From the NCBI RefSeq assembly GCF_052425735.1, contig NC_135762.1:12834001-12898000 (forward strand): a DNA stretch of 64,000 nucleotides. Direction: 5' to 3'. A model generated the notes under the pieces. The model searched no databases. It had not been told where the DNA came from and was given only the letters and a program-made list of their open reading frames with translations. The first letter of the stretch is position 1. Each line of letters begins with the position of its first letter. The DNA is from Oculina patagonica (lineage: Eukaryota). Positions 226-45,046 of the stretch are shown here, piece by piece. The translations under genes were made by a program, and so were the position numbers.

Positions 226-3200
226 GTAGTAGAGTTTGCAGAGTATGGAAATCTTGTCGAGTCATTTGCATATCACTCTGTGGAGCGACTGTGTGAATTT
301 ACAATCCAGGTTGCGACTGCTTTGGAATACCTAGAAAGTATGAAGGTCATTCACCAGTCGGTCAAGACTTTTAATTGCTTAGTTACTGCAGATTTCAAGG
401 TAAGCTCTCCTGGTGAACTGTCTGGTTAATTGACTACACTTTGCAGCTACTTATAATCATTATTTAATCCTATTTTATATAGCCTCCCACGCAGTCGTTC
501 TTAGGGAGTGAAACACGATCGCCCCTAAGAACGACTGCGTGGGAGGCTAATTTTATACTGTTTGTTGTAACTACTGTTGTGGTGGGCTTTTGACAAAGAT
601 AAAAAGAACCCGAATTTTTCTCTTTGTCTCATGGTCGTGACAACAGAAGTTGCAATTTTTTCTCCATATTTTAATTTGTTGACATATGTTTTATATTGGG
701 ATGTCAAGCGGACAACTATATACTGGTTTTGCAACACCCCCTTCGGGGTATACCATGGAATATCTCACTTATCGCTTGTAATTTCTCGGTATACACACGA
801 GCCTTTTATACCATGCCATAGAAAATACGGTGGCCAACACAATCATACGCGCAGACATATGCGCAGACTTCATTTTGAAAGGCGTTTAACTTGCTTTCTA
901 TTGTTTATTTTTATTTATTGAAAATTCTGACACAGAATACAAGAAAATAGATGTCAAATAATGTTATTATAGTCAAATGCTCGAAACATTCTAGCATTCA
1001 AGACTTCTCGATGTTTGGTAAATTCGCGGCTTTCAACTAAAGATGTTGTTGCTCTTTAATGCCACCCATTCACGTTTCTGAAACTTGTCAAGGAGTCAGC
1101 CTTTATCTCCAGAATGAAATGGCAAAGGTGGTTATCCAATTCTGCAAAAGGAATTTCGGTCAGACGTCTTTTGAAGTTTTCTCTGAACAAGTTGGAGCTT
1201 GATTGAACTTGACAAACTTGCTGCCATCCTAATTAATTTTCTTTACGTTTTTGGGTTTCTTTGCTCTTCAACAGAAACTTTTTGATCAGTCAGCAGTGTT
1301 TTGCTGTTTAGATCTTTATTTTCCGCTGCGTTTTTTTCCTCAAAAGTGAAGCCGAGAGAGTCATTTGGTTCTGACATGACTCAAACAACACTTGGAAGAA
1401 ACTGAAAGTGACACCTTACTAAATTTTCACAGGAATAGGATCGTAGCGCACGATGGGAAGGTTGGGTGTAATCTCGTCGATTATTAACAACTAGCAATTT
1501 TATATTGCAATTCCTGCGTTTTGATTGGTTAACAGGCAATGAATGGTATATGAGCTCATATACCATTGACCACAAATATAGTCAGTAGCCAAAACGCGTC
1601 AACAAAACTGCTGGGGAGCTCAAATATTGCAGTTGAATGAATAATAATAAACTCCAATTTACATTCTTGATTATATATTTGATTCTTTTGACAGTTGAAG
1701 CTTGCAGGCATTGGAGCTTGTCGGTTTGAGAGCGACATAAGAATGTTAGTGTGTCTCACTTGTACTTAGTACGGATAACTTACTTGATTTTATGTTGCTG
1801 TTAGGGTGGGATTGCTAGCCCTTATTTCCCAACCTCCTTCTTTTTTCATTCATTTCATTGAGTGTCTCCCGTGGATGCCTTCAGGTGGTTTTTTATTCTT
1901 CTATTCCACAATCATTAGTGTGAAGAATAACACTGGACTGTTAAATGGAAAGCTGGACATTCTTTCTTGCTACTTAAGGCTGTTCCTTGAGCTGTTGCCC
2001 CTAAAAAATACCTTTTCAATACCTAGCGGCTGGCTGCTTACATTGGATCTCTCAATTCGTCAAAAGCTAAATATTCAGTGGAATGAGTAGATGGACGCTC
2101 TATACTCTATTGTTTGATCAGTAAACTTAACTTTCTGTTACGCTTTGTCGTTTGAATTTTTGTCTTATTAACTTTGCAGGGAAAAGCAAGTTCCCAGTGT
2201 GCTGCAGAAGGATCTGGTTTACATGTTTGCTAAGCTTTTCTCTAGTGCATTTGCCAGTTATTTTCGAAATAGCAAAGACAGTTTGAAAATTATGGTGAGT
2301 TAGTTGATTATTTTATTTGCTTTCTAATTCTTTTTTCTCGCGTCAAAATTAGTTATGGGCCCTGATAACATGGACCCTAGTCAGCCTCCACCATTTTCGA
2401 TGCCATCGAAATTTTGAAAACTGTACGGCAAAGCGAAATCGTATTGCATTGCTGTAAGTTGTGTTACTGGAAGTCTGTTTGAGTATATTCGGCAGTTTCA
2501 CAGTGATTTCTTTCGTTTACACACGCTCCGCGAAAAATATAATACCAAAATTGCTGTATGTAGACAAAAACAAAGGCGTGGCAGAATGCTGCATGCTGGC
2601 ATGCTGAGATTACGTGCCAGTCGCATATCATTTGCAAAGTAATAATTTGTTCATGAACGGGTGAAGGGTTTATTCCTGTAGAGTAACAAACAAGGGTAAT
2701 ATGACCAGTAATAACAAATTGATTCTTTTTTAAGGAAACTGTTAACTGCGTAGGGTGGAAAATGAAAGATTTAGCTGGTTAATCAACTAGAGGTAAAAAG
2801 GGAAGAGAATCGGACACCATTGGGGGAGACCATAAGTAGCCTGTCAACTGGCTTGTGGCAACTGAATTGTTTATGTTATATTTCTACCAAAACGTTTCAT
2901 TACAGTACTGTAATCCAGGTAGTGTTCGAAGGAGGCTAGTAGACGGTAAGTATCGATATCTATTAGCTACATTAACAGATGCGTTGTGGCAAGTTACAAT
3001 GCAATGATTCCATCAATAAGTTTTCGCTTGCATGGTTTGGTCAAAATAGTATACGTGGGAAACCATCATCGAGAATCCTCTCTTCAGAATATTGACGCCT
3101 CAGTAGAGAAACGCGTAAGATGTAAAACGCCAAAACCATTCCATTCATTAAAAAAATTGCTACATTTAGAGAGGAAGCCACATCAGCGCTAGCTGGTTTT

Positions 3201-6200
3201 CATGTGGGTCCTCTGTCCAGGTCGAATTGGAATTTGGAAATGTTGGTTTTTCAGGAGGGAGGAAACCGGAGAACCCGGAGAAAAACCCTCGGGGCAAGGC
3301 GAGAACCAACAACAAACTCAACCCACATATGGCACCGGGCCGGAATCGAACCCGGGCCACATTGGTGGTAGGCGAGCACTCTCACCACTGAGCCATCCCT
3401 GCTCCCCTTGGTCGGTTAAAGTTTTCGGTGATTTTTATTGGTGTTGGGCATGTGACATGCACAACCAATGAAAATCACCGAATACTTTAACCGACCAATT
3501 AATGAATGGAATGGTTATAGCGTTTTACATCTAAAAAAATTGCTTTTTCTTGGGTGTCACAGCAGCGGTCTGCCAAAAGTTATATCACGTGACCTATTTT
3601 TATAAAATCAACAAGAAACGGCAAACTACGTACAGCGCAAGAAACAAAGTAAAAAGCAAAACACACCTGGATAGTAAGAAAGGACAAATGCAAAGTATAA
3701 CTGGAAGAGAAGAATTACATTTAATGATTAAAAGAAAATTAGAAACAGAAATGCCTATTACTCTTTGCAATAATAGCAACTAGACAGACATTGACCCCGA
3801 GGATAGACCTTGCTGGCACGAGTATCGTATATCATGCGAATGTCACGCTGCAATACAACGCAACTTTTTTGTTGAGCAACAAAAGAAGTTTCAATGAAGT
3901 TACCTTTATGTTTAATGAATTAATAAAAAATAGAGATGATTAAAGGCTTCTAAGAATAACCAAGTGACACGGGGCACAAAGCCCAAAGGGCTTTTGATTA
4001 TTGTTTACTTTCACTCTTCTGGCTCCTCACCTTTTGTACGATCCAGACAGTCTGACAACTTTGACAGTTTGCTTGCTTTAATAAAATACTGCATTTCGAA
4101 ATCAATTGCCTCCCCTACCATGGGTTTTCTCGGTTTCCTTTAATTTTGTTTATTTTATTTCGTTGTTAGTTTGTTTGTCTATTTTTTTGTCTATTTAAGA
4201 AAACTGCAAAACCACAAGATGTAGTATATGGTTACCTTTGTCCCTCCCATTTTTGTGACGTATTTAATCGGTGTTTGCAAACGGATCCAGATGAAAGACC
4301 TTCCTTTTCTGATGTCAGGCGGTCTCTTATTGCACAGGTTAGATTATTGGTTAACGTGTGTATCGATATGTAACTGAACACCCCACACCCTCCCCCACAA
4401 GGTTTTTCACACTTGATTCCTGCACAAAGAAACGTCACACCGCGTGAGGGAGGTACAGGGGAAATGTGGACTCCTAAGTTCTCGGTACGAAAAGATTGGA
4501 GTACAAGTTTCTCTTGAAAATTGAGATGACTTTCTACAGTATGTGGCCAAATTGTAGGGAAATGCGACCTGAAATTCGAAACCCTTTAGTCGAACCACTT
4601 CTAAATTTTTCTTTTATTAGAACTTTTCAAGGAGTCTCTTTCACTTATAAGTACAGCTAGTTACACTATAGTATTTGATGCTCTCTGGACACAAAATGTT
4701 TCTTTATAAGAGGGAAACACTCTTGAGCAGTTGCCAGAAGCCATTATACATTAAAGAAAATCAGGTTGAAAACAAAAAATTCAATGGCTTGTTTCGCCTC
4801 TAATTATTAAAGATAATTTGTCATGTATTGACTTTAATTTATTGTAGCATTTGTTTTCTTACAGGAGCAACCTTTAAAGGTGAGGGTTACCAGCAGCTTC
4901 AATGCAGAGTCAAAAGGGTTTCTAAGCTGTGAAGCTGGAGATCTTATAACTCTTATTTCCAAGGACCGTCACAGGTACGTTATTAAATAGATTTAGCCAA
5001 GCCTAAAAGCGTAGCTCCCCGGTAATTTACATTGCCCTTTATTTAAATGTCTGAATTCACTGACCATAGGCATAAAAAAATTGGTCTTGAGCTCGCGATC
5101 CAATATAAACCTTTTTCCTGTCAGCGGACAATTTTATAAAAACACGTTACCTCGATGAGTTATGCACCTGAGCCCGCTATATGGTCACGCGATACTGGTC
5201 AGCGGACACCTTGTGTTGACAGCTGTCAACTGACCATAACGTGGATGTCCAGCATCAAAGAGGTTATAGGTTAACCTATTTCTGAAGTGGGCAACGTACG
5301 AATGGACGGACGTACGCGCCCGCGAGCCATGTCACTAGCCGTGATGACCATAAAAACTGAAGTTTATGGTTTTCCTATTTCTTTGGATTTTCTATGGGTA
5401 TGGGGCTCTGCTCTAAGGTCCTTCGGGCCGCTGTGGAGCTCGCTATAATAAAAGAATACAGTCAACTCTCTCTTAACGGACACCTTTATAAGACGGACAC
5501 CTCCATAAGACGGACACCTGGTTATGGTCCCTGCCGTTTTTCAGTCATTTTACTGTAAGAAAACTCTCTGTAAGACGGACACCTCTCTAAGACGGACAAC
5601 GGACACTTTGAAACCGCCAACGGACAGGCACTTAAAGTTTTTTTTTTCGTGAATAATACTTCAAAACTTGTTATCGACATATAGCATAGCAGGTCAGCGC
5701 CTTTAGAATACCTAGTTTACCAAAAACAATCCGCTAAAACGCATTACTTCTCTGCTTATACTTGAAGATTTAGTTTTCTACTTACAGTATCACCGTTTGT
5801 TATTAACAAACAAGTCAAATCTCTGATATTATTTTTGTTCCACTTTATAGGTCTTGCTAACGTAAGTGACTAAAACAGACGTGTATTCGTTGTGCATGGC
5901 CGTTTAGCTTTATGGTCTTAAAATTTCTGGTGTCACGTTACCTCGACTCTCTATAAGGCGGACACCTCTATAAGACGGACAGTTGGGGCTGGTCCTGACG
6001 GTGTCCGTCTTAGAGAGAGTTGACTGTTGTTCAGAAATTGTTAAAACCACCACTGACTATTTCATAATTTCTGTCGACATTTTTGGAAGGGAATAGAAGA
6101 AAGGAAAGCTGTTGTAGTTGTTGTTTTCAGTTTACTGCATAGAAGACAAAATTGCTAGATGGTGATTGGCCTTAGAATGCGGATATGTTTTGTTTCACTT

Positions 6201-9200
6201 CACATTGCGCTAGTTTAATTAAATATCACTTGAGGACTTAATTCACATGTGAAATTACAAGATAAAACGTGACATTTGGCATTTGGTATGGAGTTAACAT
6301 GAAATTCATTCAAATGCCAAAAAAGGAAATAAATATTCCATATGGATTGAGTGATTTACAGAGGGAAAACATCTCCATCATTGAAATATGGTTCGCAATG
6401 CTTGCTACATATTTTAAGGTTCATTCGAAAAGAAAACTGGTTTATCTGTGGGAACATTCAAATGGTGTAAGAGGAAAGTCATGGTTTCCATTCCTACCGA
6501 GATAGAATACCGGCAGAAGTATTGAGAAGTAATTAAGAAGACTGTCAGACTTTGACGTGTGCTTCAGGTTACACATGTCACTTCTATTAGTGACCTAACG
6601 TGCCTACTCAAAAACGCAATTAAGCAAATGCTCAAGCTTCTTGAAGTACACGAAGCTTGATCTTACCAGGTGTTTTCTATGTGCGTACAACTTGAATCTA
6701 CCTATCATACTACAGAAGCAAAATGAAACAAGCCTGATATGTTTACTTGCAGGGGCGACAAAAATGCGTGGCTAGGTGAAACAAAAGATCGAAAAATTGG
6801 ATTTTTCAATAGCGAGCATGTAGAGGAAGTTTTGGAGGAGAATGTTGATGGTATGAGTAAACATTTGATCCGTAGATGGTTAAAGCTGCACTGCCTAGTT
6901 TTTAAACAAGAAAAAAAATCTTATTTATTTTGGTTTTCAGATTCAGTTATACCACCGGAGATCCGTGCACGAGGCCCGAAAGCCGAACTTGCTTTCCAAA
7001 ATGCCCTGCGGAATGGAAAAGTGAAAGTGTACCGTGGTCGCATTATGTTTCTTGGACAGGCCCGAGCAGGGAAAACGAGCCTGAAGAAATCACTTCTTGG
7101 CATCCCGTTTAACCCTGAAGAAGAGAGTACCGTGGGAGTCGAAGTTGACCCATCCAAGTGTGAAGTGCATGTTGACCAAGTTAGCAACTGGCAGCGCACG
7201 GAACAAAGAAAGCTTGATGTCTCTGAGTTTGCTGACGACATAGCAAGGATAATCGCTAAAGACTTAACAGAAACAGGGGTGGACCAAAAGGACGTCGATG
7301 ACGTGGATTTTGGCGTTGAGGAGGTAACAGGTTAACTTCTACAGACACTTGTTAACTCTACGGAAATGGCGTTTACTAGAAACCTTTTTCAGGTCGTTTT
7401 TTGTTTCGTCTGTGACGGCGAGGGTGAGAGGGGGAGGGAGGGGGTTCCTAAGGATATTGAAGCTTGGTGTCGAAACGTAGAAAATCTTTAGCATGTCCAA
7501 AAAAAAAAGATGGTTCCATTGAGGCCTGCGACACGATATAATGGCGTCATGAGGTGAGAATGGCGTCATTATTAATTTTCCGAACAACCGCCATCTTGGA
7601 CATGCAGTCTTGACTTCTTCTTGACTTTCTAGGCAATATCAAGTTCGTTCTAAAAATGTCAAAAGTACGGTTGTAAAGACTTCTAGTGGCAGCAAAAGTT
7701 TGATAAAGCAACACATTCTGTAATTTTGCTAATTATTTCTTTTTCTGCTTGTATTACCACATTAGGGGAACGGGGATGAGGTGGATGCTGGCGGTCCAAA
7801 GGAATTAGAGGACTCACCGGACATAGCCAAGCCAATACAGGAGACAGAACAGGAGAACGAGGCATCAGCTGGAGACCCTAGCACCATTGAGCTAGAGAGA
7901 AGTAAACCGGCAGATCCAGATATTCAACTGGGTATTGATACCACTGCAGCTTTACCTAATGACGTCACAGATTTGGTTGTGCAATACTTGCAAAATCTAA
8001 AATTAGAGGAAAGCATCAAAACAAAAGAAGCCATTTTAACTCTTTGGGATTTTGCCGGGCAGCACCTTTATTATGCATCCCATTCTGTTTTCCTCTCCCC
8101 ACGAGCTATCTACGCCTTGGTGTATAACCTTAGCAAAGATCTGAATGCTCCAGCAGAACCTTGTGTCAGACAGGGCATTCACGATATTGTCCTGGAAAAC
8201 CCAAACAATGAGACCAATTTGGAGAGTTTGTTGACCTGGCTGGCCTCTCTTCACAGTATTCGGCCAATAACAGATGAGGCTGTTAGTGATCAGGAAGGGA
8301 AACTAGCGTACCTCCGTCCTCCAGTGTTTATTGTAGGTACTAATGCAGATAAACATTTTGAAGATGTTAAGAAAATGGAAAAGTGCATCCAGAAGAGTAT
8401 CTCAGGAAAGACGTACGAGAAGCATGTGATCAGACCACTCTTTGCTGTTGACAACACAAGATCGTTTGGTGATGAAGGGGTTCAATCGCTGCAGAAAAGG
8501 GTCATGGAGGTGTTGAAACAAGAGCCGTACATGGGTGAAGAGGTGCCAATAAGGTACTTTGCTTTAGATCCCAATTAATAAGTAAAAAGAACGACAGTTA
8601 AAAAAGGTCAATAAGATAGATCATTGTTGTATCAAAAAGAAAAACCCATCACCTACTTGAGTCTTTATTCGCATTGACGTTTTCAACAATTTTCTCGAAA
8701 AGTTGCATTAACTTCCAGTGATTGTTGATCTGTCTAAGCGCTACCACAAATAAAAGCAACTGATGAAAAGAACTCATGCAAATGACGCGAGCCTTGATTG
8801 ACGTTGCAGCCTAGAAGAACTTTAGAGAAAATCTGTAAAGTGCACTGTAATAAAAATCATTAAGCAAAGAAAAAACGTTAACCCCATCCCAACCCACCCA
8901 GGCCACTTTTCACTGAAACCATAAACAGCCTAGTCACAATGGCTTTTTTTGTTACGGTAAATCGTAACCAAACGTAGAAAGGAGAGTGAGTGTTGGTATA
9001 CCACATCAAAGCCAATCACACTCCACAAATTAAGTTTTTGGTTGAAAGGGGGCAACAGAAAACATGTGCAGTTTGTCTTTCCTCAGGTGGTTTACCTTCG
9101 AGAAAGTCGTCGACGCTTTAATAGCAAAGGAAACCTATCATATGAATCTTGATCAGCTCCTAGTTGTCACAAGACAAGTTTGCCGCATAGACGAGAAGGA

Positions 9201-12200
9201 AGAATTGAATGCCATGTTGAATTTTTACCATGACCTCGGGGTGATAGTAAAGCATGGCCACACTGTTGTGCTGCAGGCTCAGTGGTTGATTGACCTTTTC
9301 AAACAACTCATAACCGTGCGACCTTTTGACGAAGTGGTAAGCAGAGATGGTGATTTACGTTATTACACCAGTGCTCCACATTACTTTGTGCGTGGTCGTA
9401 TAAACGTCGTTGCTAGTTTTGTGTTTACTTTTACCAGTGAAAGATGCAACACCACACAAACCATCATGTCTACGTCCAAACGTCCTAAAGGATTCCTGAG
9501 TTATCCCTAAACTCAGAAGATTTTGAAATCAGACTGGTGATTTGGAACCTAACCTAATTCCCAGCTTTTTGAATACACCATCAAGAATCTAACTAGAACT
9601 TCACATTTCCATAGTACGACAATTTTACTTGGCTCGTTCCCACCTTTTCCATGCCCCTTAACGACTTGATTACCACTCGGTGTTAGATGACTTGGTTTGT
9701 AAAAACCAAAAATGTGGATGTGCCACTGTTAATTCCTGTTTATTTATTGTATTTATTACCGTTTTATAGCAATATTTTTCCTCTTATATCTCAATTAAGA
9801 ATCCTCTGTACTCAGAATGCTGGCTGGAACTCGAGAAAAGTGGTATCCTCAGGATGACTCTCGTCGATCACGTTTTCGCAGATTACATCCAGAAAGGCCT
9901 TTCCAAGGAGGACGTTTTGGATATGATGGAGCTTTATGGGTTAATCGCCAAATTTTCCTTTGTACCAGCAGTTGGCGAGCAGGAACAAAGATACTTTGTA
10001 CCCGCCCAGCTTCGATCATCCCCTTCAGGTCTGTGTGAGATAACGCCCTCTAACAGCGATCCTTGCCCCCTGTATCTGCACTTCCTCGATGGATTTGTCC
10101 CTCATGGGCTATTTCCTCAGCTGCTGTCAAGAAGTATTCTCTGGTGTTCTGAACGCGGTCCCAAACAAGCTCCTAATCTGTACCACAATGGGGCAAGGCT
10201 TTTCATCGGAAAGCAGACCATTTACAATCTGATTCTTATCTGCAGAAAGAGATTCATCAAGATCATTTTGAAGGAAAGAAGACCTTCTTCAGCACCTCCA
10301 GTAACTGCATCATCGGAAATGGGACGTGACGTTCGCCTATTCTTGGAAGATACTTTGCTTGACTTGTCACAGGAGTTGTCCTGGCTATGCAATCTCCGAT
10401 ATGAATTGTGTGTTGCTTGCACCAGTTGTTTAAAGGAGGAGTGCATCAAGCACGGAGAAGTTTGCTGCGCTCACGATGACTGTCTACATCTTCTCCGAGT
10501 GCTTCCTGAAGAACAGCTGATTTGCCCGAAGAGCTTTAGCGATGATACAGTTGAAGTTCTTGGCTTGGAGAAATGGTTCCAGGGCCATAAAACGAAGGTA
10601 CTAATTCTTTCAAATTTTCTTTAACTTAAGTTGTAAACGATTATGTAAGGTGAAGGGTAAAGTCTGTGTTTGAACCTAGTGGTCCATCAGGTCAGAGCTT
10701 ATCGCGGTTTCCGTAGCATTAAAAGACTAGCAGTATTCTTAATCCTCTCTGGACGAGATACTAGTCCATCGCAGGGTTACCCCCCAGCATCACATTCGCC
10801 GGTACTCATTTATACAAGTCGGTGGAGAGAGGGCATTATGAGAGTAAGGTGTCTTACCCAAGGACACAACGATTATTTAGTTCAGTGCAGTTTAATCCTG
10901 AATTTCCCCCAGTATCGTTTGGTAGAGATGAGGTTTTTTTTTATTTCCATCAACAGTCTTGGTATCCTCAGTGGCTGGTCTTGCAAGACATGCTATACTT
11001 CAAATCTAAATATTTTACATCTTTGACCTAAACATTCAACAGCCGTCGTTTTAATAAGCTTTTTTTTTTTTACTTTCTCCTTTCTCAAAATAGATTAATG
11101 AAGAACAGAGAGTGGCTTTTTTGGCCCCTGAAGGTAAGAACAGCGGGTGCTCTATTTTAAACATATATTTCGGTTCTTCTCAATCCATGAGAGATAATCA
11201 AGGCGGTATCAAAACCAAGCAAATTTGGAGTAATTGCAAGGTCGTGCGCGATTGATCAATGTTGTCATCAAAACAAAGTTCTGTTTAGCTAAAGTAAGAA
11301 CTAACTAAGAAGAAGAATCAGCGAAAGAGGAATAGACAAATGGAAACAAATAACGGCTGCGAAGGAGTCTACAAAACCTCCTATTGCCAAATAATCGTTC
11401 GCAGGCTTCATGCTTGTATAGAACTACGTGAACATTAATTGTTAAGCTGACGGCTCTAAGAGATATTCTCCAACGAAAAATGATTGTTTTTATTCCGGTT
11501 CGCAGTTTGCGCAAGCATGAATTTTACTAACTTCAGGTGTATCTAATTTTTAAAGGGGCTATGTCTCGGGGATTTCGCAGATTTTCGGTCTAAACTGTTC
11601 CGAAATTAGTGGTAGGCATCTTAACCCATGAAGAACATCTTATTACGGAAGAAATAACCTTGATTTGTGAATATAATTCAAGCTACGGCCTTAATTATCG
11701 ATTTTTTGAAGACGCGTGGAAACAACTTGAAAAGTTAAGCCTTAATTTGCAATCTACTTCCATCCGTGCCATCCGCTGCCAAAGATGCTTATTAACACTC
11801 TCAGTGCTCTAATATAGCGATTTTTAATAAAAATGGTCTATTATCTTTAGGTTTCCTGCAAAATAAATATAAATTTTGCCTGTTTAAAAATCTGGTAAAA
11901 TCCGTGACAAAGCCCCTCTAAGGCATCCATGTCAAAACAGTATCTTCACTAAATAATGCTGAGCTAAAGGAATCTTTGCAAGCTTAAGGAATCTTTTATT
12001 GTTTTTGTTACAACTTTCATAGCTTTGGATCAAGCTTTATCATCCAAAACTGGCACTCCGTCAACAGATGATCTTCTCCTCCTTGCCTTTGAGCTGGGCA
12101 CCTCATGGAAGATGCTTGGTCGAACCCTGGCTCTTCCTGAGCCAGTTCTGGAGCAGATTGAAGTGGATAACTCTTACCTATCTGAGAGATGCTATGGTGT

Positions 12201-18152: not shown

Positions 18153-18160
18153 TGCCTCTC

Positions 18161-19387: not shown

Positions 19388-19571
19388 TCGAGTCAAGTCA
19401 TTTTTTTTAACAATTAGATAAAGATTTTATCGTAGATTATAATAAATTTTTTATATGACTTGTATATATTTTTATTGTATTTATAATATTAGTATTAGTG
19501 TAGTTTTTAGTTTTTAGCAGTGTCCCCTAATTAGTATGGGTGTTTTTTTCCCAGGCTATAAGGTTTTTTTG

Positions 19572-30250: not shown

Positions 30251-30290
<40 letters not shown>

Positions 30291-33200: not shown

Positions 33201-36200
33201 ATTGGCCACATGAAGAGATACGTTATCGCAGATTGAGCATGTTATATTTTTCGCTCGTTCGAAACTCATTCATTTTCACTTGCTCTTTCTTTTAGGCAGC
33301 TTCAAAATCACAAGATGAAGTACCGGTTTTTGGTTCCCTTTGTCCTACGCATTTTTACGACGTATTCAGGCGTTGTTTGCAAATGAATCCAGATGAAAGG
33401 CCCTCGTTTTCGGAAATCAGGCGATCTCTTGTTGCAGAGGTAAAATTGCTTTTATGTTATCATTAAGATTTATGGTGTCAACGCTAAATGTATATATCTG
33501 AACGAATTCGCAGCAACCTGGCCGCAAAGTTTTCGCTTGCGAGTTCAAGCCCATCTAGCAGCCTTAACTTGTTGGGAAGGGGGGGGGGGGGGGGGGGGAG
33601 AGGGGGAGGGGGTGCTTAATGTCAGGAATGGTGTGGTGGTCTTGCCCTGGGTCTGGAGTATCCGCTGGTGCCTAGCCGTCAAAAGCTGGGGAAAAGGGAA
33701 GATGCCACTTTAGACTACTGGACCTAGCTAGGCTTGGGCTTGGGCTCTATTGAGCATGTCTGTGTTAATTTTGAATGCCTTGTGTTGATTGTGAATATTT
33801 TGAATAACATTGCTAGGGGGTTCCCTGTATAGAAGTCACCCTGCTGTTGTAGCAGGTGTTACCTGGGCTCATGACGTCCCAATCTCTAGCCAGAGGGGAA
33901 GTCAAAGGACTTGTAGCAGTCTGGAGTATTTTGGGAGATGGGTGTCCAGGTTCTTGAAATATTACTCAGATATATATTGCTAATAACAACACGTACGAAG
34001 GAGTCATTTACCGGTTAACCCAGTACAAAACAGAGTAAGGCTCGCTGCGGTATAAGGAGAGGGAAAATAGGCTCTCAACTCTTAAAATCCACAAGTTAAG
34101 AGACTGGAATTGTGCAGAATGGTTTTTGCGTATTTGTTGCCAAATGGTAGGGAAAGTCTTCAGAAATACGTCCTGAAATAAAACAACAACAACAAAAGTA
34201 CACCTTTATGTTCCCTTTAGTGTCTGGGTCCGATTGCTTAAAGTATCTTAAGATTAAGTTGGATTAGCCTGTGTACAGCCGTCACGCTCCCCTTAAAAAA
34301 ATTCTCTTTCGCGATTATTTTGAGTGAAGGGGAATTTGGTGCAACCATTCCCTGTGTTCCCCAAGGTCGCCTTGCACACTATTGGGAATAAATCAGCCAA
34401 AGGTGGATTGAAGTGTATGGGAAACAATGCTGAAAAAATCATTAGAAACCCCGAGATCAGTTGAGTACAGAAAAGTATCATACAATTTAAGTCTGTTGTC
34501 AGAAACCATTTTTGGAGGAAGGTAACGTTACATAACGTAATGAATTTATTGTCAATGGCTGGTTTTGCGTCTTATTCAAGAGTAATCGAAATTTAATAAA
34601 GTAGTGTGTTCAGCCTCAGTTATTCTAGTGTTCCTTTTATAACAGGAGCAACCTTTGAAAGTGAGGGTTGTTAGCAGCTTCAGTGCCGCGTCAGAAGGGT
34701 TTCTAAGCTGTGATGCTGGAGAGCTTATAACTGTTATCTCCAAGGACCGTCATAGGTACGTTATGAAAGAATGATTGTTAAGAAAGTATGACTACGTATC
34801 GCGGAATATTATATAAACGCTTCATAGTCTCAGTGGACACTTAAGGACGCCTAAGGAGGGAAAAGTGGCGAAAGATAAAAGTTTTTTTCCGCGTGTATCG
34901 CAAGGATTTCACACGGCATTACATGTACTGCATGGTGATTGGCTTACGCAGACGGTATTTTTAGTGCAGAATGCACTATTGTGATGGTTTGGTGGGCTGT
35001 CGTCTGCTAAACCCCTAAAGCTTTAAAGCGCTAAAGCACTATAGTGTAAACTTTTGATCGCCAATTAATTAATTAATGTCAACTAATTAATTATTCCTTG
35101 TGGAGGGGGTGGCGGTGGGGAGCACCTGACCATACACCCCAGGTAAACTCGTGGAACATATCTACGTTACTTTCATATGAAGATTTCAAGGGTATATATT
35201 TGTTTCAGAAAACTCTTTGTTCTCTTTGTGGTGCTATTTTTTCTAGAGGAAAGTACTTTGCGCCAAACGCATGCGCAGATTAGTCTATTTACGATACTTA
35301 TAATTGAAGAGCTCAAAGGTCTATATTTGTTTAGAAAGCACTATACTCTCCTTGTGGTACTATTTTTTCTGGAACAAAATACTTTGGCTAAACGCATGCT
35401 CAGATTAATATGCGTCACGAACATCGCATGTTTCTTCCTGCGGAAGGATTCCTGTGGACTCAGTGGCGCAAAGTAAAAACCGCAAATTAATTGAATTAGA
35501 CACTAATGCGCTTACGGCAGTTCATGTGAAATAATTCTTGATATGGCAACGCTGTGATCTAGCATCTACAGTGTAGTATGATTCAGAAAAACCATTTCTT
35601 GCATTAATCGATAATATCTGATCTGTGTTTTAATCGATGTTGCCCTGTTTGCAGAAAATAAATCAGGTTACCATGTCAACACGCTACGTACGTTTTTGAC
35701 AAAAACAAAAGAATCATGTTACACATGTTTTCTACAAAAACAAAAGTATCATGTTACAAAAGTATCTCGTTTGCTGTTTCAATATCAAACTGAAATTCAA
35801 ACTAACGAAAATTAAAGTATCAGGGACGTGTTTAGAAATCTTGTATCAAATCCTCACGATGTGTGCTTTTCAATGCGGTAGGATTCTTGTAGAATCCGCG
35901 GCATTAATTTAATTAGACTTTTAGGCATCACAGCGGTCTAAGTGAAAAACAAAAGTATGATGTTACATCCGTCACTTCCTTTCCTTTGATTTGTTCTCCA
36001 TCGCTTAAACTAACTTCTATATTATTTTGTAAAACCTTTGCCTGAGAGGGGCTTCGTGTGGAAGCGAGACAACTCTCTAGTGTTCGAACACGCTTTCGTG
36101 ATGGTTCCGACATTTCTTGAAAGAAATCTTCACACTTCGTGCTTCTCAGCTTCGTGCTTGAGTAAGCATGTGACATGTTCACCAGACCGTGGTGAGAGCA

Positions 36201-39200
36201 TGACCTGGCGCACAACATGCTTTAGCGACAATTTCGGAGAAAAGCCGCAATTTCGAACATTTTATGCTTTGTAATTCATAATTTGTGCTCTGCTCGTTGA
36301 TTTGCCATATTGCATTCTGCACTTCCCTTTGAGTCTCTGAGTTATTTAAGTTCACGTCGTCTTGGTTGAAATAAACATCACTTTTCCTCACTGGACACCG
36401 AGTCTCAAAGTTGTTGTGTACCAAATCCAATAACATCAGCTACTCTGCAAGATCGATTGGACACTGTTTACGACTTTCGTTTTAGGATTTCGGAATTCTG
36501 GGCGTCGGCAAGCAACTCAGACGATTAAAATTCAGTCCTTTTGAGTATTATCTGTCAAGAAAACGTTTTCAGTGAATTGCACTAATTATATGCCCTTTTG
36601 CTGTATTAGCACGGTAAGATTCTTTTCGGTATGCTTCGCGGTCATGGTTCGCAGGCGCATACGCTCTACGACGTAAGGTAAAGGTTAATGTAGGTTTACA
36701 TCTTGGATATTGGACATCCATACTATGGTCAAAACAAGAAATACGCTGACCAGTATCATATAGCCATATAGTCAATCTCATATAGTCACGGGCTCAGGTG
36801 TGAAACTCATCGAAGTTGCGTGTTTTTGAAGTTGACCGTTGACCAGGTAATGGTTTTCCATTGGATCGCTGGCTCAAGCCGATTCGCTCAAGTTCGTTTC
36901 GTTTAAGTCGGGCAACGTAAATAATCTGAGAGCTCCGCTTTTAGCCTTGGCTTAATCTATTTAATACTCTGTTGTCCTATTCCCATTAATGTACGGTACT
37001 TAATGTACAAGCAAAGGATCACGTCGATGAAATGACACAAGATTGGTCAATTTCTGATATACTTACTTGCAGGGATGACAAGAATGCCTGGTTTGGTGAA
37101 ACAGAAGACCGAAAAATTGGATTTTTCAAGAGCGAGCATGTAGAGGAACTACTGGACGAGAATATTGATGGTAGGTGCAGGGCAATAGAGTACCTTTTCT
37201 CTCGAGATGGTTAAAACTGCACTGTTAAGTTTTTACGACCAGGTAAATATCCTTAATTATTTTGGTTTTCAGATACAGCTATACCACCAGAGATTCGTGC
37301 ACGAGGCCCCAGAGCCGAACTTGCTTTTCAAAATGCCCTGCGGAATGGAAAAGTGAACGTGTACCGTGGTCGCATTATGTTTCTTGGGCAGGCCCGTGCA
37401 GGGAAAACGAGCCTGAAGAAATCACTTCTTGGCATCCCGTTCAACCCTGAAGAAGAGAGTACCGTAGGAGTCGAAGTTGACCCATCCAAGTGTGAAGTGG
37501 ATGTTGAACAAGTTAGCAACTGGCAGCGCACGAAACAAAGGAAGCTTGATGTCTCTGAGTTTGCTGACGACATAGCAAGGATAATCGCTAAAGACTTAAC
37601 AGAAACAAGTTTAGTCGAAAAAAGCATCGATGACGCTGATTCGAACTTGGAGCAGGTAATAAGTTAGCTTCTAATGCCACTTTTAAACTCCATGGAAACA
37701 GTTTTTAACCTCATTCAGACAGGTATTTTTATGGGGGGGGAAGGGCTTTTTCACAACCAGGGGGTCAGGCGATTTTTGCCCACCACATGTACGTACCTCT
37801 ATGGGTATTGAAGCTATGATGATAGGGGTGTATAGTATCTCCAAAACAAACTGGTCGGTTGACATGATGACGTTTTGATGTCGTCATGGCTTTTGAACAG
37901 CCGCCATCTTGGACGGCATGCAAATCTGATGTTCTTGACTTTTTGAAATTAGAAAACGACTTAAAGTAAGACAAATTTGGAGAACATGCCTGTTAAAACG
38001 TAATTTTTTTGATAATATCAAGTTCGGTTTAAAAGATAATGTCAAAAGTACACTTGTAAGGTCTTTTAATACAAAAAAAGGTTTACACTCCTTATAAAAG
38101 CGTGAACACTAAAAAATATGTCTGGAATGTTTGTGTTTAGCCAATCACATGCGAGAACTTCAGACCGCAGAAACCACAAACAGTAAATGGGTTTCCATCG
38201 GTCACGGAGCAACTTTAGTTCTTATTTTGTTTCAGGATACACGCTCTGTCTTTTTTAAGAATTTAAAGAACTGCTATTCTTTCGTATCGAGGGCCACATC
38301 CAGAACATGGTTTCAGGGATTTTTGAAAGAAAAAAAGGACGGTTTCTCTAGCGACGATATACGACATGGTTTAGTGCATGCAGTATGTTGTAGACATGTC
38401 TAGACATAAGATGTAAACGCGATAAACCGAATATAAAATACAAAATTGTGGAGTTTTCGTTACTGATTGTAAATCTTTTCGGTAGAACAAGGGATTCGAT
38501 TTATTTCGGCAAACGATTTCAACCCTTAGGCAATTAGAGGTTCCGTGATCGTAAGACTGCAAACTGCAAAGGCTCCAACGAAAATTATTCAAAATGTTGG
38601 CGTGATTGGTGCAAAATAAACACCTCAATCGCTCAATCGTTTGATTTTCGCTTTTCCTTCCCGCTATCGTTTCGCTGTTATCGAAAAAACAAACCTTCCT
38701 TCTATCAGTGTTTAGGTCTGCTACAATAGTTGGGGTGAGATAAAAACCGGAAAATGCAAGCTTATCTCAGTACAAATTGTAACATGCCATCAGGCGAACG
38801 GTAACTGCAGATACGAATTCGTTACAATTTTTGAAAATTGGCGGCAACTGGGGCAAATCGTAGCGTCGGGCGCATCGGTTTTTCAATTTTTTCTATAAAA
38901 AAATCACTCAAACCTATTCTTCAGTGGAGCAGTGAATGTTCTCAAAAAGGAAGGAATTACAATTAGTGTGTTTACTTGTAAATTGGAGCGAAACGAGAAC
39001 CAAATATTGTTCCGTGACCGATGGAAACCCATGTGGTTTCTGCGGTCTGAAGTTCTCGCATGTGATTGGTTAAAAGACAAAGAACATTCCAGACATATTT
39101 TAAGTGTTCACGGTTTAATAAGAAGCGGTGTAAATGAGCAACACGTTCTGTAACAGTTTTGCTTATTGTCTCTTTTACTTCCTATATTTCCAATTAGGGG

Positions 39201-42200
39201 AACAGGGATGAGGTGGATGCTGGCGGTCCGAAGGAATTAGAGATTTCACTGGACATAGCCAAGCCAATACAAGAAACAAAACAGGAGAATGAGGCATCAG
39301 TTGGAGACCCTACCGCCACTGCGCTAGTAAGAAGCGAACCAGCAGAGCTAGATATTCAACTGGGTATTGATACCACTGCAGTTTTGCCGAATGACGTCAC
39401 AGATTTGGTTGTGCAATACTTGCAAGATCTGAAGTTGGAGGACAACATAAGAACAAAGGAAGCAATTTTAACTCTGTGGGATTTTGCCGGGCAGCACCTT
39501 TATTATGCATCCCATTCTGTTTTCCTCTCCCCACGAGCTATCTACGCCTTGGTGTATAACCTTAGCAGAGATCTGAATGCTCCAGCAGAACCTTGTGTCA
39601 GACAGGGCATTCACGACATTGTTCTGGAAAATCCAAACAGTGAGACCAATTTAGAGAGTTTGTTGACCTGGTTGGCCTCTGTTCACAGTATTCGGCCAAT
39701 AACGGATGAGGCTGCTAGTCATCAGGAAGGGAAACTAGCTTACCTCCGTCCTCCAGTGTTTATTGTAGGTACTAATGCAGATAAACCTTTTGAAGATATC
39801 AAGAAAATGGAAAAGTGCATTCAGAAGAGTATTACGGGAAAGGCGTACGAGAAGCATGTAATTAGGCCATTCTTTGCTGTTGATAACACAAGATCGTTTA
39901 GTGACGATGGGGTTCAAGCACTTCAGAAAAGGGTCATGGAGGTGTTGAAACAGGAGCCGTACATGGGTGAAGAGGTGCCAATAAGGTACTTTGCTTTAGA
40001 TTCCAATTCCAGGTGTCAAATAGTAACAAGAACGTCAGTTGAATAAGTCGATAAAAAAATTAAATGCTTAAGAAAAACCATTGCCAACTTGTGTCTGTTT
40101 GCGTTTCAACAACTTTCTCGTTAACTCCCTGTAGTCCTTGAACTGTCTAACTGAAAAACAGAAGTCGTCAAAATGACCTGACCCTTGATTGACTTGCTAC
40201 CTAGAATGCAAAGATGTGAAAGTGATTTGTTATTATAACATGTACAATTATTCAGCTCAAAAGTCTTTTCAAAAGGGCAAGCAGCAAACGAGTGTATTTT
40301 TTTGTTTGTTTTCCTTAGGTGGTTTACCTTCGAAAAAGTCGTCGAGGCTTTAGTAGCAAAGGAAACCTATCACATGGATCTTGATCAGCTCCTAGCTGTC
40401 ACAAGACGAGTCTGCCGCATAGACGACGGGGAAGAATTAACAGCCATGTTGAATTTTTATCATGATCTCGGAGTGATCGTAAAGCATGGCCATACTGTTG
40501 TGCTGCAGGCTCAATTGTTGATTGACCTTTTCAAACAACTCATTACTGTGCGACCCTTTGATGAGGTGGTAAGCAGAGATTTCCCTATGAACTCTATATT
40601 ACTTCTGGGCTCGGAAGAACTTGCCATATGATTACTCATAAAGTTCAGTGTCATTTTGGCCAGGCCTAAATCCCAGCTTTTTTATAGACCATCGGGAATC
40701 TTAAAACGAAATTTTCATACAGCAACATTTTCACCTTTCTCCTTCCATTCTCTCCTATTTAATTTCATTTGTCCAAAACGGGACGTCACTCTACATAAAA
40801 GCAACATTGCCTATCTTTAAGCACAGTGTAGGCTCTAGTTTACTCAAATGTGCACTAAATTCTTACGAAAATGCCTCTGAAAGACTTGATTCCCACTCGG
40901 TTACAAGGCGGAGGTATACTTGAAGGCCGTTTATCCACCGCTTAATATCGAATATCTCGTTCGCCTTTCAAGCAATCCAAACGAATCTACAGTGTATTTT
41001 TTTTTGCGGTGTTTTGAATATTTTTGGCGATATTTGGGAGGAAACAGTTTTTCTCAAAGGACTAGTAAAATATAGAGAAATAAGAAATATTCAAGATTAT
41101 ATGTGATTTGAAAATTAGAATTTGAAGTTAAAAATTAGTTAGTGGACACCCAACCAGTCCCCTGACAACCTGGAGCGCTCTTGGTGGTGTTCTTTATTGT
41201 ATCCCTTTTTCAAAACCTCTTAAAATTTCATTCAAATTCACTTTTACCCCCGCCTCAAGTGAGGTGGCCCATGAAAACAAAAAACTCACTCTACGGTACT
41301 TTTCTTGTCATATCTTTATTCAGAATCCTCTGTACTCAGAATGCTGGCTGGAACTCGAAGAAAGTGGTATTCTCAGGATGACTCTTGTCGATCACGTTTT
41401 CGCAGATTTCATTCAGAAAGGTCTTTCTAAGGAGGACGTTTTGGATACGATGGAGCTCTATGGGTTAATCGCCAAATTTTCCTTTGTTCCCGCGGTTGGC
41501 GAGCAGGAACAAAGATATTTTGTGCCTGCCCAGCTTCGATCATCCCCTTCAGGTCTGTGCGAGATAAAGCCCTCTAACAGCGATCCATGCCCACTGTATC
41601 TCCATTTCCTCGATGGATTTGTCCCTCATGGACTATTTCCTCAGCTGCTGTCAAGAAGTATACGCTGGTGTTCTGAACGCGGTCCCAAACAAGCTCCTAA
41701 TTTATACCAAAATGGGGCAAGGCTTTTCATTGGCAAGCAGACCATTTACAATCTGATTCTTATCTGCAGAAAGAGATTCATCAAGATCATTTTGAAGCAA
41801 AGACGTCCTTCTTCAGCACCTCCATTAACTGCATCAGTGGAAATGGCACGCGACGTTCGCCTCTTTCTGGAAGATACCCTACAAGACTTGTCACACGAGT
41901 TGTCCTGGTTACGTAACCTCCGGTATGAACTGTGTGTTGCTTGCACCAGTTGTTTAAAGGAAAGTAAAGAGTGCATCAAGCACAGAGAAGTCTGCTGTGC
42001 TCACGATGACTGTCTACATCTTCTCCGTGTGCTTCCTGAAGAACAGCTGATATGCCCGAAGAGCTTTAGCGATGATACAGTTGAAGTTCGTGGATTGGAG
42101 AAATGGTTCCAGGGCCATAAAACGGAGGTACTAATTCTTTCAAATTTTCTTTAACTTAAGTTGTAAATCATTATGTAAGGTGAAGGGTAAAGTCTGTGTT

Positions 42201-45046
42201 TGAACCTAGTGGTCCATCAGGACAGAGCTTATCGCGGTTTCCGTAGCATTAAAAGACTAGCAGTATTCTTAATCCTCTCTGGACGAGATACTAGTCCATC
42301 GCAGGGTTACCCCCCAGCATCACATTCGCCGGTACTCATTTATACACCTGGGTGGAGAGAGGGCATTATGAGAGTAAAGTACCTTGCCCAGGGACACAAC
42401 GATTATTCAGTTGCAGTTTAATCCTGAATTTCACCCAGTATCGTCTGGTAGAGATGAGTTTTTTTTTTTATTTCCATCAACATTCTTGGTATCCTCAGTG
42501 CTTGGTCTTGCAGGACATGCTATATTTCAAGTCTAATTATTTAACATCTTTGTCTAAACCTTAACATTCAACAGCTGTCTTTTCAAGCTATTTTTTTTAT
42601 TTACTTTCTCTTTTTTTAACATAGATTGAAGAACAGAGAGTGGCTTTTCTGGCTCCTGAAGGTAAGAACAATGTGTTCTTGTTAATCATAAGAGCATGTG
42701 ATCTATGAGCAATATACAATGCGGCCCCTATACTTGGAAAATTTGGAGTAATTGCAAAATATCATCCGCGATGTATCAGCATGGTCATCAAAATCAAGTT
42801 CACGCTACTTTTTTACGTAGTTATAAATGCGTTATTGGCTCTGTCGAGCTATACTAAGAACTAACTAAGAAGAAGAATCAAAGAAAGAGGAATAAAACAA
42901 TGGAAACAAGTTATTTCAGCGAAGCGTCGCGTGACGACCCAAAAGTGGCTGCGTAGGAGACTACAGGACCTCCCATTGGCAAATAATCGTTCGCATGCTT
43001 CATGCTTGTATAGGACTAAGTGAACGTCAGTTGTTCAGCTGACAGCTGTAAGAGAGATTCTCCAACGAAAAATGTTTGCTTTTGTTCCGGTTTGCAGTTT
43101 GAGTAAGTTTTAAATTCTACTAAATTTAGGTCTATCTAATTTTTAAGGCGCCCATTTCAACAATGCACCGTTACTGAATATACCTTAAGGAGTCTTTGTA
43201 ATGTACAGGATTGATCATGTCAACAATTGTTATTGTTGCAGCTTCCATAGCTTTGGAACAACCACCATCCAAATCCGGCACACCTTCAACCGACGATCTT
43301 CTCCTTCTTGCCTTTGAGCTGGGCACCTCATGGAAGATGCTTGGCCGAACCCTGGCTCTTCCTGAGCCAGTGCTGGAGCAGATTGAAGTGGATAACCCTC
43401 ACCTATCTGAGAGATGCTATGGCGTGTTAAGACGGTGGACAGAAGTTTTTGGGTCAGCGGCAACTTACGAGTCACTGGCGCGAGCATTGCAGCATCCCAT
43501 TGTGGGAAAAGGAGAACTTGCTGTCAAGTACTGTGACGTTTGCAGAGATGCATATCAAGGTAGATAGTTAAAAACTCCAGCCGACCTTAGAATTCTGATG
43601 AAAAGGGTTCAACAAATGATTACCAATTTTCATCATAATCGATGCCTTTACCCTGTTTTCTAATACCCGAGCAGGCAGGATAGTGGGATTGCCTCCTGTG
43701 TCCCGCAGTAAAAATGTTGGTCTTAAAGCCATATAATAAATTCTTTACTGACCTTGCTCTTTTTCTTTATGGCATAATTATGAAACTCATCTTAGATCTA
43801 CATCTCGATCCATTAACACGCAAAAAAGAACTTTGCCTAAATCCAAACATCTTGATTTAGCAAGCTTGGTCAATAACCCTTATATTTGATACAATTTTAG
43901 ATGTGGACACCGCACCCATCCCCTCTCAGACAGCTGATGTTTCCGGCTCGAGTTGCCCAGTTTTCCTGTCGTATCAGTGGGATTTACAAGACACAGTGAA
44001 AAGACTGAAAAGCAGGATGCAAGAGAGTGGGATTCAATGTTGGATGGACATCGGACAGATGGGCGGTGGCGATGCTCTGTTTGCAAAGATAGATGCCGGT
44101 ATTCGAGCGTGCAAGGTCAGATAAATTATTTTGTAACCCTGGCCCCTCGTTCTTTGTTTCTTTCTTCTTTGTTTTCGAAATCATAGTACGATTTCGCCCT
44201 ACAGTGAGCAGAAGCAAATGTGTCTTGTGATTGATAATTGAACGTTGTTCCCTCTGGTAAAAGAGATCAGAAACCAAGAAAACCCGGTGTACCTGTAGTT
44301 TTATTGGACCGGCTAACAGTAACATTGCAATCACGATATAACGACACTTGGGAACTAAACAAACCTAATGATTTAAGAGATATTACGTCATATGAACTCT
44401 TTAACGAAGATAGTATTAAGAACGTCGTTGTTTTACACACCTGCTACATTAATGAATCACCAGATACAACGAACCTGCTGAAAAATCAACTTCTTTTGCG
44501 ATAGAACGAACTTCGTGATCTCAAATCTCCTGGTATGACAGACTTCCCTCTATAACGAACATCCATGTATAACTAACTGGCAGATTTATCAAACCTTCGG
44601 GTATCACTAGATTTCCGGTGTAATCTCCCGGTAATCTAACTACTGATAAAACAAGATAAAAACTAAATGCAAATAGTTATATTCGACGGTTCTTTTTCAT
44701 TTCTATAAGGAAGCCCGTTAGAACGAACTCCAACTTACAGCGAACATACTGTTTGAACAAATAACAATTCTTTCTCCTTTTTGTCCTGGCATAGGTCTTC
44801 GTTTGTTGCGTAACAGAAAAATACTGCCAATCAGACGCCTGCCAAGGAGAGGCCACCTTAGCTCATAGCTTAAAGAAACCCGTCATCCCTCTGTTGTTTG
44901 AAGACATTTCCTGGCCTCCAGAAGGTCAACTCGCCTTGATCTTTACCAAGCTTCTTTACATCAAGATAACCGAGAAACACGGCACCATTCCTGATGCAGA
45001 GTTCCAACAGTTGATGAGAAAAGTGGAAGAGTTTGTGAAACCTTGA
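25084..45046 (+). CDS. ROCO-family gene copy B, apparently complete (1449 aa): SAM-like, ACK-type pseudokinase, SH3, Roc, COR, death domain, TIR
   Basis: 18 coding exons: 25084-25182, 25417-25641, 28783-28941, 29022-29165, 30474-30647, 31097-31140, 31988-32102, 33296-33439, 34646-34755, 37073-37170, 37273-37655, 39198-39985, 40319-40568, 41324-42127, 42625-42661, 43251-43559, 43901-44115, 44795-45046. They sum to 4350 nt with no internal stop. Intron phases match copy A and exon lengths match or differ by 1-2 codons. The start exon is the least certain. Confidence 0.87.
26633..28240. mobile_element. Foldback-type element with ~245-bp TIRs built of tandem ACCATAAATGTAAT motifs (intronic)
   Basis: Arms 26633-26877 and 27996-28240 are near-perfect reverse complements with TGT...ACA ends. 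There is no coding capacity inside. Confidence 0.8.
30198..30288. repeat. (TCAA)n/(TCCA)n compound microsatellite
   Basis: Direct reading. Confidence 0.9.
38086..39130. mobile_element. MITE with ~120-bp imperfect TIRs, copy B only
   Basis: TA|CAC...GTG|TA. The arms 38086-~38208 and ~39012-39130 are reverse complements. This accounts for the intron being ~1.1 kb longer than in copy A. Confidence 0.7.

Follow-up and report, generated by a model that had tools for sequence, protein, structure and literature searches.

A crossover hybrid in a tandem array of pseudokinase-SH3-Roc-COR-Death-TIR genes of the stony coral Oculina patagonica

Why should two neighbouring paralogues be hardly recognizable as relatives at one end and almost identical at the other? 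The question is raised by a stretch of 64,000 nucleotides (nt) from the stony coral Oculina patagonica (assembly GCF_052425735.1, contig NC_135762.1, positions 12,834,001 to 12,898,000; hereafter the window, in whose own positions all coordinates are given unless stated), home to A and B, members of a tandem array of three same-strand (+) paralogues whose third copy, C, lies beyond the window's end. Their products carry, in this order, a dead kinase fold, SH3, Roc, COR, Death and TIR domains. An earlier note on this DNA, made from the letters alone, had described a hypervariable pseudokinase joined to a near-invariant TIR, and had offered two explanations: diversifying selection on a sensor domain, or recurrent unequal crossover or gene conversion that puts old, diverse N-terminal modules onto a homogenised signalling module. 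The answer reached here is that B is a hybrid, whose front is of C type and whose back and 3′ flank are of A type, and we hold it about 80% probable that the steep gradient between A and B results jointly from this hybrid constitution, a laxer constraint on the kinase module and a patchy homogenisation of the core exons.

Self-comparison of the window together with the neighbouring DNA lets A start ~4.2 kb upstream of the window and end at ~14440, places B at ~25080-45046, and locates C 22 kb downstream of B. Exon models of the three copies rest on the annotated protein P0186 (LOC144655584 isoform X1), on splice sites and on blocks of conserved sequence. The 17-exon model of A reproduces P0186 residue for residue; B, for which the searches brought up no annotated protein and whose gene model was built in this analysis, and C have the same intact 17-exon structure, with all introns GT-AG and no stops. 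Between A and B the gradient is exactly as steep as first counted by hand: 33 of 58 amino acids are identical in exon E4 (226-399 in A, 30474-30647 in B), 15 of 38 in E6 (2180-2294 and 31988-32102, in the correct frame, which starts at 2181) and 81 of 83 in the last TIR exon (14191-14439 and 44795-45043). The introns also behave as the note had seen by eye. Introns 1-8 are 0% alignable even with sensitive settings, the alignment being limited to the exons plus ~20-85 nt of flank; introns 10-12 are poorly alignable (8-61% covered); and from the COR end onward, alignment covers 47-100% of introns 13-15 and of 1.6 kb of 3′ flank, with an identity of 0.76-0.91.

The third copy turns this gradient into a junction. 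In a three-way alignment read in steps of 400-nt windows, C is the copy closest to B (0.91-0.96) as far as the beginning of E13, the COR-B exon; from E13 onwards A takes that place (0.82-0.95), and C turns unalignable. The introns of B and C align at 0.72-0.95 from intron 3 to intron 12, and are 0-11% alignable from intron 13 onward, flank included, with the exception of intron 14; the pattern between A and B is the reverse. Immediately upstream of E13, 80 nt of flank are 0.975 identical between B and C and 0.49 between A and B, whilst the 80 nt immediately downstream are 0.97 identical between A and B and 0.68 between B and C. Quartet-informative sites, counted for the pairs BC, AB and AC, also change along the gene: 80:4:5 in E1-E7, 35:13:11 in E8-E12, 9:27:3 in E13 and 6:7:6 in E14-E16 (heterogeneity chi-square = 82, p = 1e-15). 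The best estimate for the switch from C-like to A-like sequence is 41422-41438 on the forward strand, the maximum chi-square (220) falling between sites 41422 and 41428, ~100 nt into E13 of B (41324-42127), homologous to ~9898-9904 in E13 of A (9800-10597); recombination was tested here by our own maximum chi-square and runs tests in place of GARD/GENECONV. Beyond the genes, the spacer between A and B runs collinear with that between B and C from end to end, and the unit of ~31.5 kb running from E13 of A to E13 of B is tandemly repeated as E13 of B to E13 of C. Since these two units differ by roughly 10-24% in their non-coding DNA, the crossover event is old, and neither an allelic nor an assembly effect. 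And because the front of B was copied from C, comparing the kinase parts of A and B really means comparing the lineages of A and C, which are much older.

Tandem arrays are known to yield hybrids through unequal crossing-over, as in haemoglobin Lepore and anti-Lepore or in the opsin genes. Here, a two-gene array of A, spacer and C would have undergone an unequal homologous crossover within E13, leaving A, a hybrid with the front of C and the back of A, and C itself. Equivalently, there would have been a tandem duplication with homologous in-frame breakpoints, the ~31.5 kb unit consisting of the 3′ part of a gene, the spacer and the 5′ part of a gene. The likeness to the Lepore and opsin hybrids lies in the in-frame junction at homologous positions of diverged tandem paralogues, and in the extra gene copy coming with a duplicated spacer; the difference is that the event behind B is old, its two units being ~15% diverged in non-coding DNA, that it is fixed in the assembly and that it was probably followed by further patchy conversion. 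A search of the genome for a closer donor of the kinase module of A found none, the only matches being A, B and C themselves and a 36%-identical exon at C5:6859503, so the front of A was not imported from another present-day paralogue.

It is improbable, in our judgement, that B is instead a full C-like duplicate which later received from A, without any crossover, one long conversion tract extending from the COR-B exon to the 3′ flank. Such a tract predicts the very same switch within E13, and smaller conversion-like patches do occur in these genes. However, the A-like stretch of B has no distal end, as it continues collinear through the 3′ flank and the whole spacer into C-like upstream DNA. 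A conversion tract would need a second end, whereas such an unbroken continuation is what one expects of a single tandem duplication whose breakpoints lie in E13.

The segments along the A-B comparison also differ in age. With transcript L038 (protein P0191, run ERR9592242, from a related coral) as outgroup and four-fold sites as a neutral yardstick, A and B diverge by 0.37 in E1-E7, 0.11 in E8-E12, 0.20 in E13 and 0.15 in E13b-E16, and every segment lies 0.47-0.60 away from the outgroup. Because the outgroup divergence is uniform, the silent sites of the core are not specially constrained but coalesce later. The contrast between the parts, 29 differences at 78 four-fold sites in E1-E7 versus 61 at 416 in E8-E16, is significant (Fisher p = 1e-5). 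Uniform silent divergence (dS) along the gene, together with a near-neutral dN/dS in the kinase exons, had been named beforehand as the pattern that would speak against the note's interpretation; by the Nei-Gojobori method with bootstrapping, dS between A and B is clearly non-uniform, at 0.58 [0.44-0.78] in the kinase exons versus 0.25 [0.20-0.29] in E8-E16.

Age, though, is not the only difference between the two ends. The cleanest comparison of constraint is E13 between A and C, which seems unconverted: its dS is 0.53 and its replacement divergence (dN) 0.092, against a dS of 0.58 and a dN of 0.251 in the kinase exons of the same pair. At a similar silent depth the kinase accepts ~2.7 times more replacements than COR-B, with net purifying selection remaining, and the word 'hypervariable' in the earlier note overstated this excess. 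Between A and B, dN/dS is 0.46 [0.32-0.66] in the kinase exons and 0.19 in E8-E16; the kinase value is 0.43 between A and C, both pairs being significantly below 1 (p ~ 1e-5 to 1e-6), and against the outgroup the kinase has a ratio of 0.25 and the core one of 0.14. We read the kinase module as weakly constrained, neither neutral nor globally positively selected; pervasive diversifying selection is not supported.

Diversifying selection on a sensor pseudokinase could in principle drive the gradient by itself, in a gene whose whole length has a single duplication age, and some observations do point that way: the kinase dN/dS is higher between paralogues (0.46-0.68) than versus the outgroup (0.25), E2 and E6, on the Gly-loop side and in the post-DFG segment, together hold 24 replacements versus 2 silent changes between B and C (one-sided p = 0.049), and the N-terminal tree has a long B/C stem branch. 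We nevertheless consider this explanation unlikely. Selection on replacements leaves unexplained that four-fold silent divergence is itself ~3 times higher in the kinase part (0.37 versus 0.15), and that the kinase introns and flanks are at random-alignment level while divergence from the outgroup is uniform. The A-B and A-C ratios are significantly below 1, and the signal of E2 and E6 is post hoc, the two having been picked among 17 exons. With a kinase ratio of 0.46 and a confidence interval of 0.32-0.66, diversifying selection finds no support as the main cause of the gradient.

The opposite explanation, that the kinase module is merely relaxed, a dead domain decaying by neutral drift on an otherwise conserved gene, is less probable still. 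Every catalytic motif is lost, the C-lobe region of E5-E6 is short, and the B-C kinase ratio of 0.68 is not distinguishable from 1, all as relaxation would have it. Yet the frames and all the splice sites are intact in three copies, and the dead motifs have been kept from sea anemones to corals, meaning that the pseudokinase has been retained for very long; the ratios of 0.25 against the outgroup and 0.43-0.46 between A and B or C are both significantly below 1; and relaxation cannot account for the higher silent divergence or for the pattern of the introns. As for an assembly artefact (chimeric joining, repeat collapse or a haplotig misplaced as a tandem copy, for instance, aided by the unread gap at 19572-19737, which does sit beside nested repeats in the A-B spacer), it is very improbable, given that the non-coding divergence among the copies, 5-25%, is far beyond that of alleles, that the switch point is 22 kb away from the gap in contiguous sequence, that the flanks of the gap are collinear with the other spacer, and that independent runs hold exon words of B, with one contig showing its E3-E4 splice.

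The core exons suggest a further process beside the hybrid constitution of B. In E8-E12, the silent distance from A to B or C (0.11-0.17) is as small as that between B and C, in the midst of introns 10-12 that barely align, intron 11 being ~70% identical. In E14-E16, C is as near to A and B as these are to each other, and its introns and flank there are unalignable. The intron flanks are 0.64-0.66 identical at the core exons and 0.55-0.57 at the kinase exons, the random baseline being 0.55 +/- 0.04. Within the A-like part of E13 of B there are two patches in which B equals C (41587-41632 and 41866-41930), and a runs test for clustering of discordant sites gives p = 0.0008 overall. In addition, the GC content at third codon positions (GC3) is 0.45-0.51 in the core exons and 0.38-0.40 in the kinase exons, the latter being equal to the GC content of the introns; a raised core GC3 is what GC-biased conversion would be expected to leave. 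Together, these patterns suggest exon-centred gene conversion among the copies. Short conversion tracts centred on exons would have repeatedly homogenised the Roc/COR-A and Death/TIR exons of all three genes, and the A-type and B/C-type kinase modules would have escaped this homogenisation.

Several points weigh against the joint explanation. The data consist of three copies from one haplotype only. The B-C kinase ratio mentioned above (0.68, interval 0.40-1.24) is indistinguishable from neutrality, and the excess of replacements in E2 and E6 of the same pair could reflect some positive selection. The runs test becomes borderline when limited to E9-E12 (p = 0.057), the raised GC3 could equally reflect codon preference in conserved exons, and an older second crossover near intron 8 could explain part of what is ascribed here to conversion. 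The tree of the N-terminal part lets the separation of the kinase modules of A and B/C predate the speciation from the ERR9592242 coral, but weakly, putting the outgroup inside the A/(B,C) split with an ultrafast bootstrap (UFBoot) of 81, and the approximately unbiased (AU) test does not reject monophyly of A, B and C (p = 0.09). Finally, the evidence for transcription of B is a single contig with a splice, and that its run is RNA is a guess.

With these points set against it, the joint explanation by hybrid origin, laxer kinase constraint and patchy conversion still accounts best for the gradient, recombination having the main share in it and the laxer constraint coming on top. It bears out the recombination alternative of the earlier note, since B is a crossover hybrid switching within the COR-B exon. 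The 'recurrent' in that alternative fares less well, as the crossover events directly shown number just one. The idea of old N-terminal modules on a homogenised core survives in modified form, as old modules sitting on lineage-specific Roc-COR cores whose exons look patchily homogenised.

In the products of these genes, Pfam recognizes SH3, Roc, COR-A, Death and TIR_2 in addition to a kinase fold. The kinase fold is matched by PK_Tyr_Ser-Thr with E = 8e-24 on P0186, a match that recurs in the B counterpart of E4 of A, and in the Protein Data Bank (PDB) by the kinase domains of ABL1, ACK1 and RIPK1 (E ~ 1e-13). In the alignment of A, B, C and all the anthozoan homologues, the catalytic residues are lost, the motifs reading KVCLRY, IH(Q/K/R)S and GIG/GLA, which we take to be VAIK with its lysine changed to arginine, HRD without its aspartate and DFG without its aspartate. 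Conservation of these dead motifs, among them KVCLRY and HEAEM, reaches from sea anemones to corals; P0199 of Calliactis polypus and P0201 of Nematostella align with A, B and C over the full length and share them. Roc scores 52.6 bits (cut-off 27) and has its P-loop, GQARAGKTS, in E10; COR-A scores 28 bits, under its cut-off of 35.3, in the right position and consistently across homologues; Death is found with E = 2e-10 in the B exon and 1.6e-8 in P0186, and TIR_2 with E = 5e-21. The best solved relatives of the TIR are the NADases Cat1 and AbTIR, with weak matches (E = 7e-6 to 1e-3), and one of its glutamates aligns with the W-C-x-x-E glutamate of these two, suggesting a TIR of prokaryotic or bacterial type that keeps a putative catalytic glutamate. 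Going by the domains, the pseudokinase-SH3 end would serve as a binding or sensing module, Roc-COR would act as a GTP-controlled switch, and Death together with the bacterial-type TIR and its putative catalytic glutamate would be the output.

The metazoan ROCO proteins LRRK1, LRRK2 and DAPK1 also combine Roc-COR with a kinase-fold domain. The likeness consists of a Roc GTPase followed by COR plus a kinase fold, and in DAPK1 of a Death domain as well; unlike in those proteins, the kinase here is dead and N-terminal to Roc, the C-terminus is a TIR of bacterial type, and there are neither leucine-rich repeats (LRRs) nor ankyrin repeats. Plant TIR-NLR (nucleotide-binding, leucine-rich-repeat) and other resistance-gene clusters evolve by unequal crossover and gene conversion. 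They resemble the present array in being tandem clusters of mosaic copies, in which the putative sensor end varies more and the signalling end, a TIR, is conserved, but here the variable end is the N-terminal pseudokinase-SH3 with a dN/dS below 1, and not LRRs under demonstrated positive selection; the switch would be Roc-COR where plants have NB-ARC, and any immune role of the coral genes is suggested by analogy. The nearest described architecture is that of NG3 ('Novel gene 3') of sea anemones, with the same order of kinase, SH3, Roc, COR, Death and TIR (van der Burg et al. 2016, PMC5094078). That work gave the architecture only, put it down to domain shuffling and offered no locus-level history (PMC5094078), whilst in this stony coral the genes form a three-copy tandem array with a documented hybrid copy.

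The disparity between front and core extends beyond the array. The COR-B exon has at least 27 close relatives in the 529-Mb genome, and the pseudokinase exon occurs in only three copies plus a distant one; a search for further N-terminal homologues brought nothing new. Coral proteins combine the Roc-COR(-Death) core with NACHT, glycosyltransferase, HEPN, TPR, LRR, OTU, Neuralized or kinase-SH3 fronts. Homology to the non-kinase members begins at E10, that to the NACHT-type P0002 starting from 6937. In a tree of 42 Roc-COR cores, the grouping of the proteins follows lineage (Acropora, Montipora, Oculina) instead of front module, and a tree constrained to unite the kinase-type cores is worse by 438 log-likelihood units (AU p = 3e-41), whilst the kinase-SH3 fronts of the same proteins give an ordinary species-like tree. 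Either the cores have been homogenised within genomes, or the fronts have been repeatedly re-shuffled. It is tempting, if only tentatively, to propose a shared cassette, in which ongoing exon-centred conversion and unequal crossover keep the Roc-COR(-Death/TIR) core of stony corals near-identical within each lineage under much older and diverse fronts (pseudokinase-SH3, NACHT, glycosyltransferase, HEPN, TPR, OTU), on genes that can sit on different chromosomes; the hybrid in our array would then be one example of it caught in the act. Alternatively, exon shuffling at the phase-1 intron that precedes E10 could have given each lineage its architectures anew.

As far as the summary in PMC4083563 of Hamada et al. 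2013 goes, coral NACHT/NB-ARC (NLR-like) repertoires also feature tandem pairs and triplets, lineage-specific expansion and N-terminal shuffling. The parallels with what that summary describes are the tandem triplet, a common core shared by diverse N-terminal modules (NACHT, GT4 glycosyltransferase, HEPN, TPR, kinase), and a core phylogeny that follows lineage; relative to it, the common core here is Roc-COR(-Death-TIR) instead of NACHT, the junction left by recombination is located to within a few bases, and the silent-site strata are measured.

The history that emerges for the locus is one of an old split between A and C, a single crossover in COR-B creating a third gene, and, probably, a later patchy homogenisation. 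It means that a variable sensor end facing an invariant TIR end need not imply positive selection. It also means that comparisons of paralogues within such clusters mix segments of different ages, by which whole-gene trees or whole-gene dN/dS would be misled. B is a clean example of a known process, ordinary for tandem immune-type clusters, in a known gene family whose function is proposed from its domains. For the genomics of coral innate immunity it illustrates, in one worked case, the birth and mixing of kinase-Roc-COR-Death-TIR genes, and the Roc-COR cores that follow lineage beneath older N-terminal modules give a testable lead on the diversification of cnidarian receptor repertoires.

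The exons of A within the window, all on the forward strand like those of B, divide among the domains as follows. E4 (226-399), which matches P0186 exactly, covers the HRD-equivalent region of the pseudokinase, E5 (1695-1744) the degenerate DFG region, E6 (2180-2294) the C-lobe and E7 (4200-4337) the end of the kinase fold. SH3 (Pfam SH3_2) spans 4865-6850, in E8 (4865-4974) and E9 (6753-6850), which the unalignable intron 8 separates; Roc and COR-A, both recognized by Pfam, occupy E10 (6941-7323), E11 (7766-8553) and E12 (9087-9336). E13 is followed by the 40-nt E13b (11094-11133), located through residues 1144-1155 of P0186, by E14 with Death (12023-12334) and by the TIR exons E15 (12698-12918) and E16 (14191-14442, including the stop), the last three with their Pfam matches; the 3′ flank (14443-16093) is 83% identical to that of B. 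Two candidates were rejected along the way. The open frame at 10661-10882 in A and 42191-42412 in B is intronic and not an exon, P0186 using the 40-nt exon instead, and E6 of A is no pseudogene: the three stops met on reading it from 2180 are a phase effect, as the exon opens with the third base of a split codon and its open frame begins at 2181.

In B, a putative first coding exon of 12 codons from an ATG lies at 25084-25119 and is conserved in C. The nearest homologue outside Oculina, P0191 (1455 amino acids), which is encoded at L038:165-4532 by a full-length transcript contig, has a 41-residue N-terminal extension resembling this short first exon of B and C. The C-type exons E1-E7 of B (25417-33439) encode a SAM-like region and the pseudokinase: E1-E3 are at 25417-25641, 28783-28941 and 29022-29165, and E4-E7 at 30474-30647, 31097-31140, 31988-32102 and 33296-33439. 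SH3, Roc and COR-A follow in E8-E12 (34646-34755, 37073-37170, 37273-37655, 39198-39985 and 40319-40568). Past the hybrid junction in E13 come E13b (42625-42661), the Death exon E14 (43251-43559) and the TIR exons E15 (43901-44115) and E16 (44795-45046), set among A-type introns, and the A-type 3′ flank (45047-46689).

Several public runs contain exon words of B, and one contig of run X1 splices 29165 to 30474 (GT..AG), which corresponds to intron 3. These runs are only guessed to be RNA, their contigs are short and intronic contigs also occur among them, so that they lend modest support to B, or a close allele, being spliced as modelled. A contig of the same run tracks E5 of B (31097-31140) as far as 31123 and then continues with letters unlike either the intron or E6; it may stem from an allele or a paralogue, or from alternative splicing.

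The assembly gap (19572-19737) falls between the genes, 5.1 kb past the stop of A and 5.3 kb before the first coding exon of B. Lying in the spacer, it is crossed by no reading frame and leaves the comparison of the two genes untouched. It forms the right edge of a 3.1-kb insertion of dispersed repeats found in the A-B spacer only (16615-19737), in which 16615-19571 holds at least three kinds of nested repeat, with dozens of copies of 87-98% identity on many chromosomes. The letters flanking insertion and gap, 16520-16614 and 19738-19879, are collinear with 47656-47750 and 47755-47899 in the B-C spacer, so order and orientation across the gap are consistent. The rest of the A-B spacer (19738-25393, forward) is likewise collinear with the B-C spacer, 19875-22102 matching 57673-60456 and 23900-25393 matching DNA upstream of C. 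The B-C spacer in turn holds a 9.8-kb Polinton-like element with terminal inverted repeats (47902-57673), at whose ends a short TTAAG-like duplication is visible. Its empty site is preserved in the A-B spacer at ~19875-19879, where the left flank (19738-19879) equals 47755-47899 and the right flank, from 19875, equals 57673 onward: the element was inserted after the segmental duplication.

The introns have their own mobile DNA, and their sizes in this cluster change fast. Intron 2 has 80 nt in B (28942-29021), 992 nt in A and 1865 nt in C, and intron 10 of B (37656-39197) has an insertion of ~1.1 kb absent from A and C. In intron 5, otherwise unalignable between A and B, a 94-nt block (1899-1992 in A, 31435-31523 in B) is 72% identical; a conserved regulatory element would be one candidate for it, an alternative micro-exon another. 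Introns 13b and 15 of A share a direct repeat of ~370 nt (11552-11912 and 13168-13546, 79%), the two being probably copies of one mobile element. Repeats of one family lie on opposite strands in intron 8 of A (4981-5288) and of B (36966-36671), with further copies upstream of A and in intron 3 of C, and would be independent insertions of one element at similar positions in the genes. Intron 1 of B has a pair of inverted repeats (26633-26877 and 27996-28240; 245 nt, 99.6% identical, 1.1 kb apart) which looks like a young non-autonomous DNA transposon, with no open reading frame of at least 80 amino acids between the repeats. Outside the window, at C5:12915430-12919786 (81430-85786 on the scale of the window), intron 5 of C carries another pair, 248 nt long, 97% identical and ~4.1 kb apart, as part of the ~12 kb of extra intron DNA by which C is longer than B.

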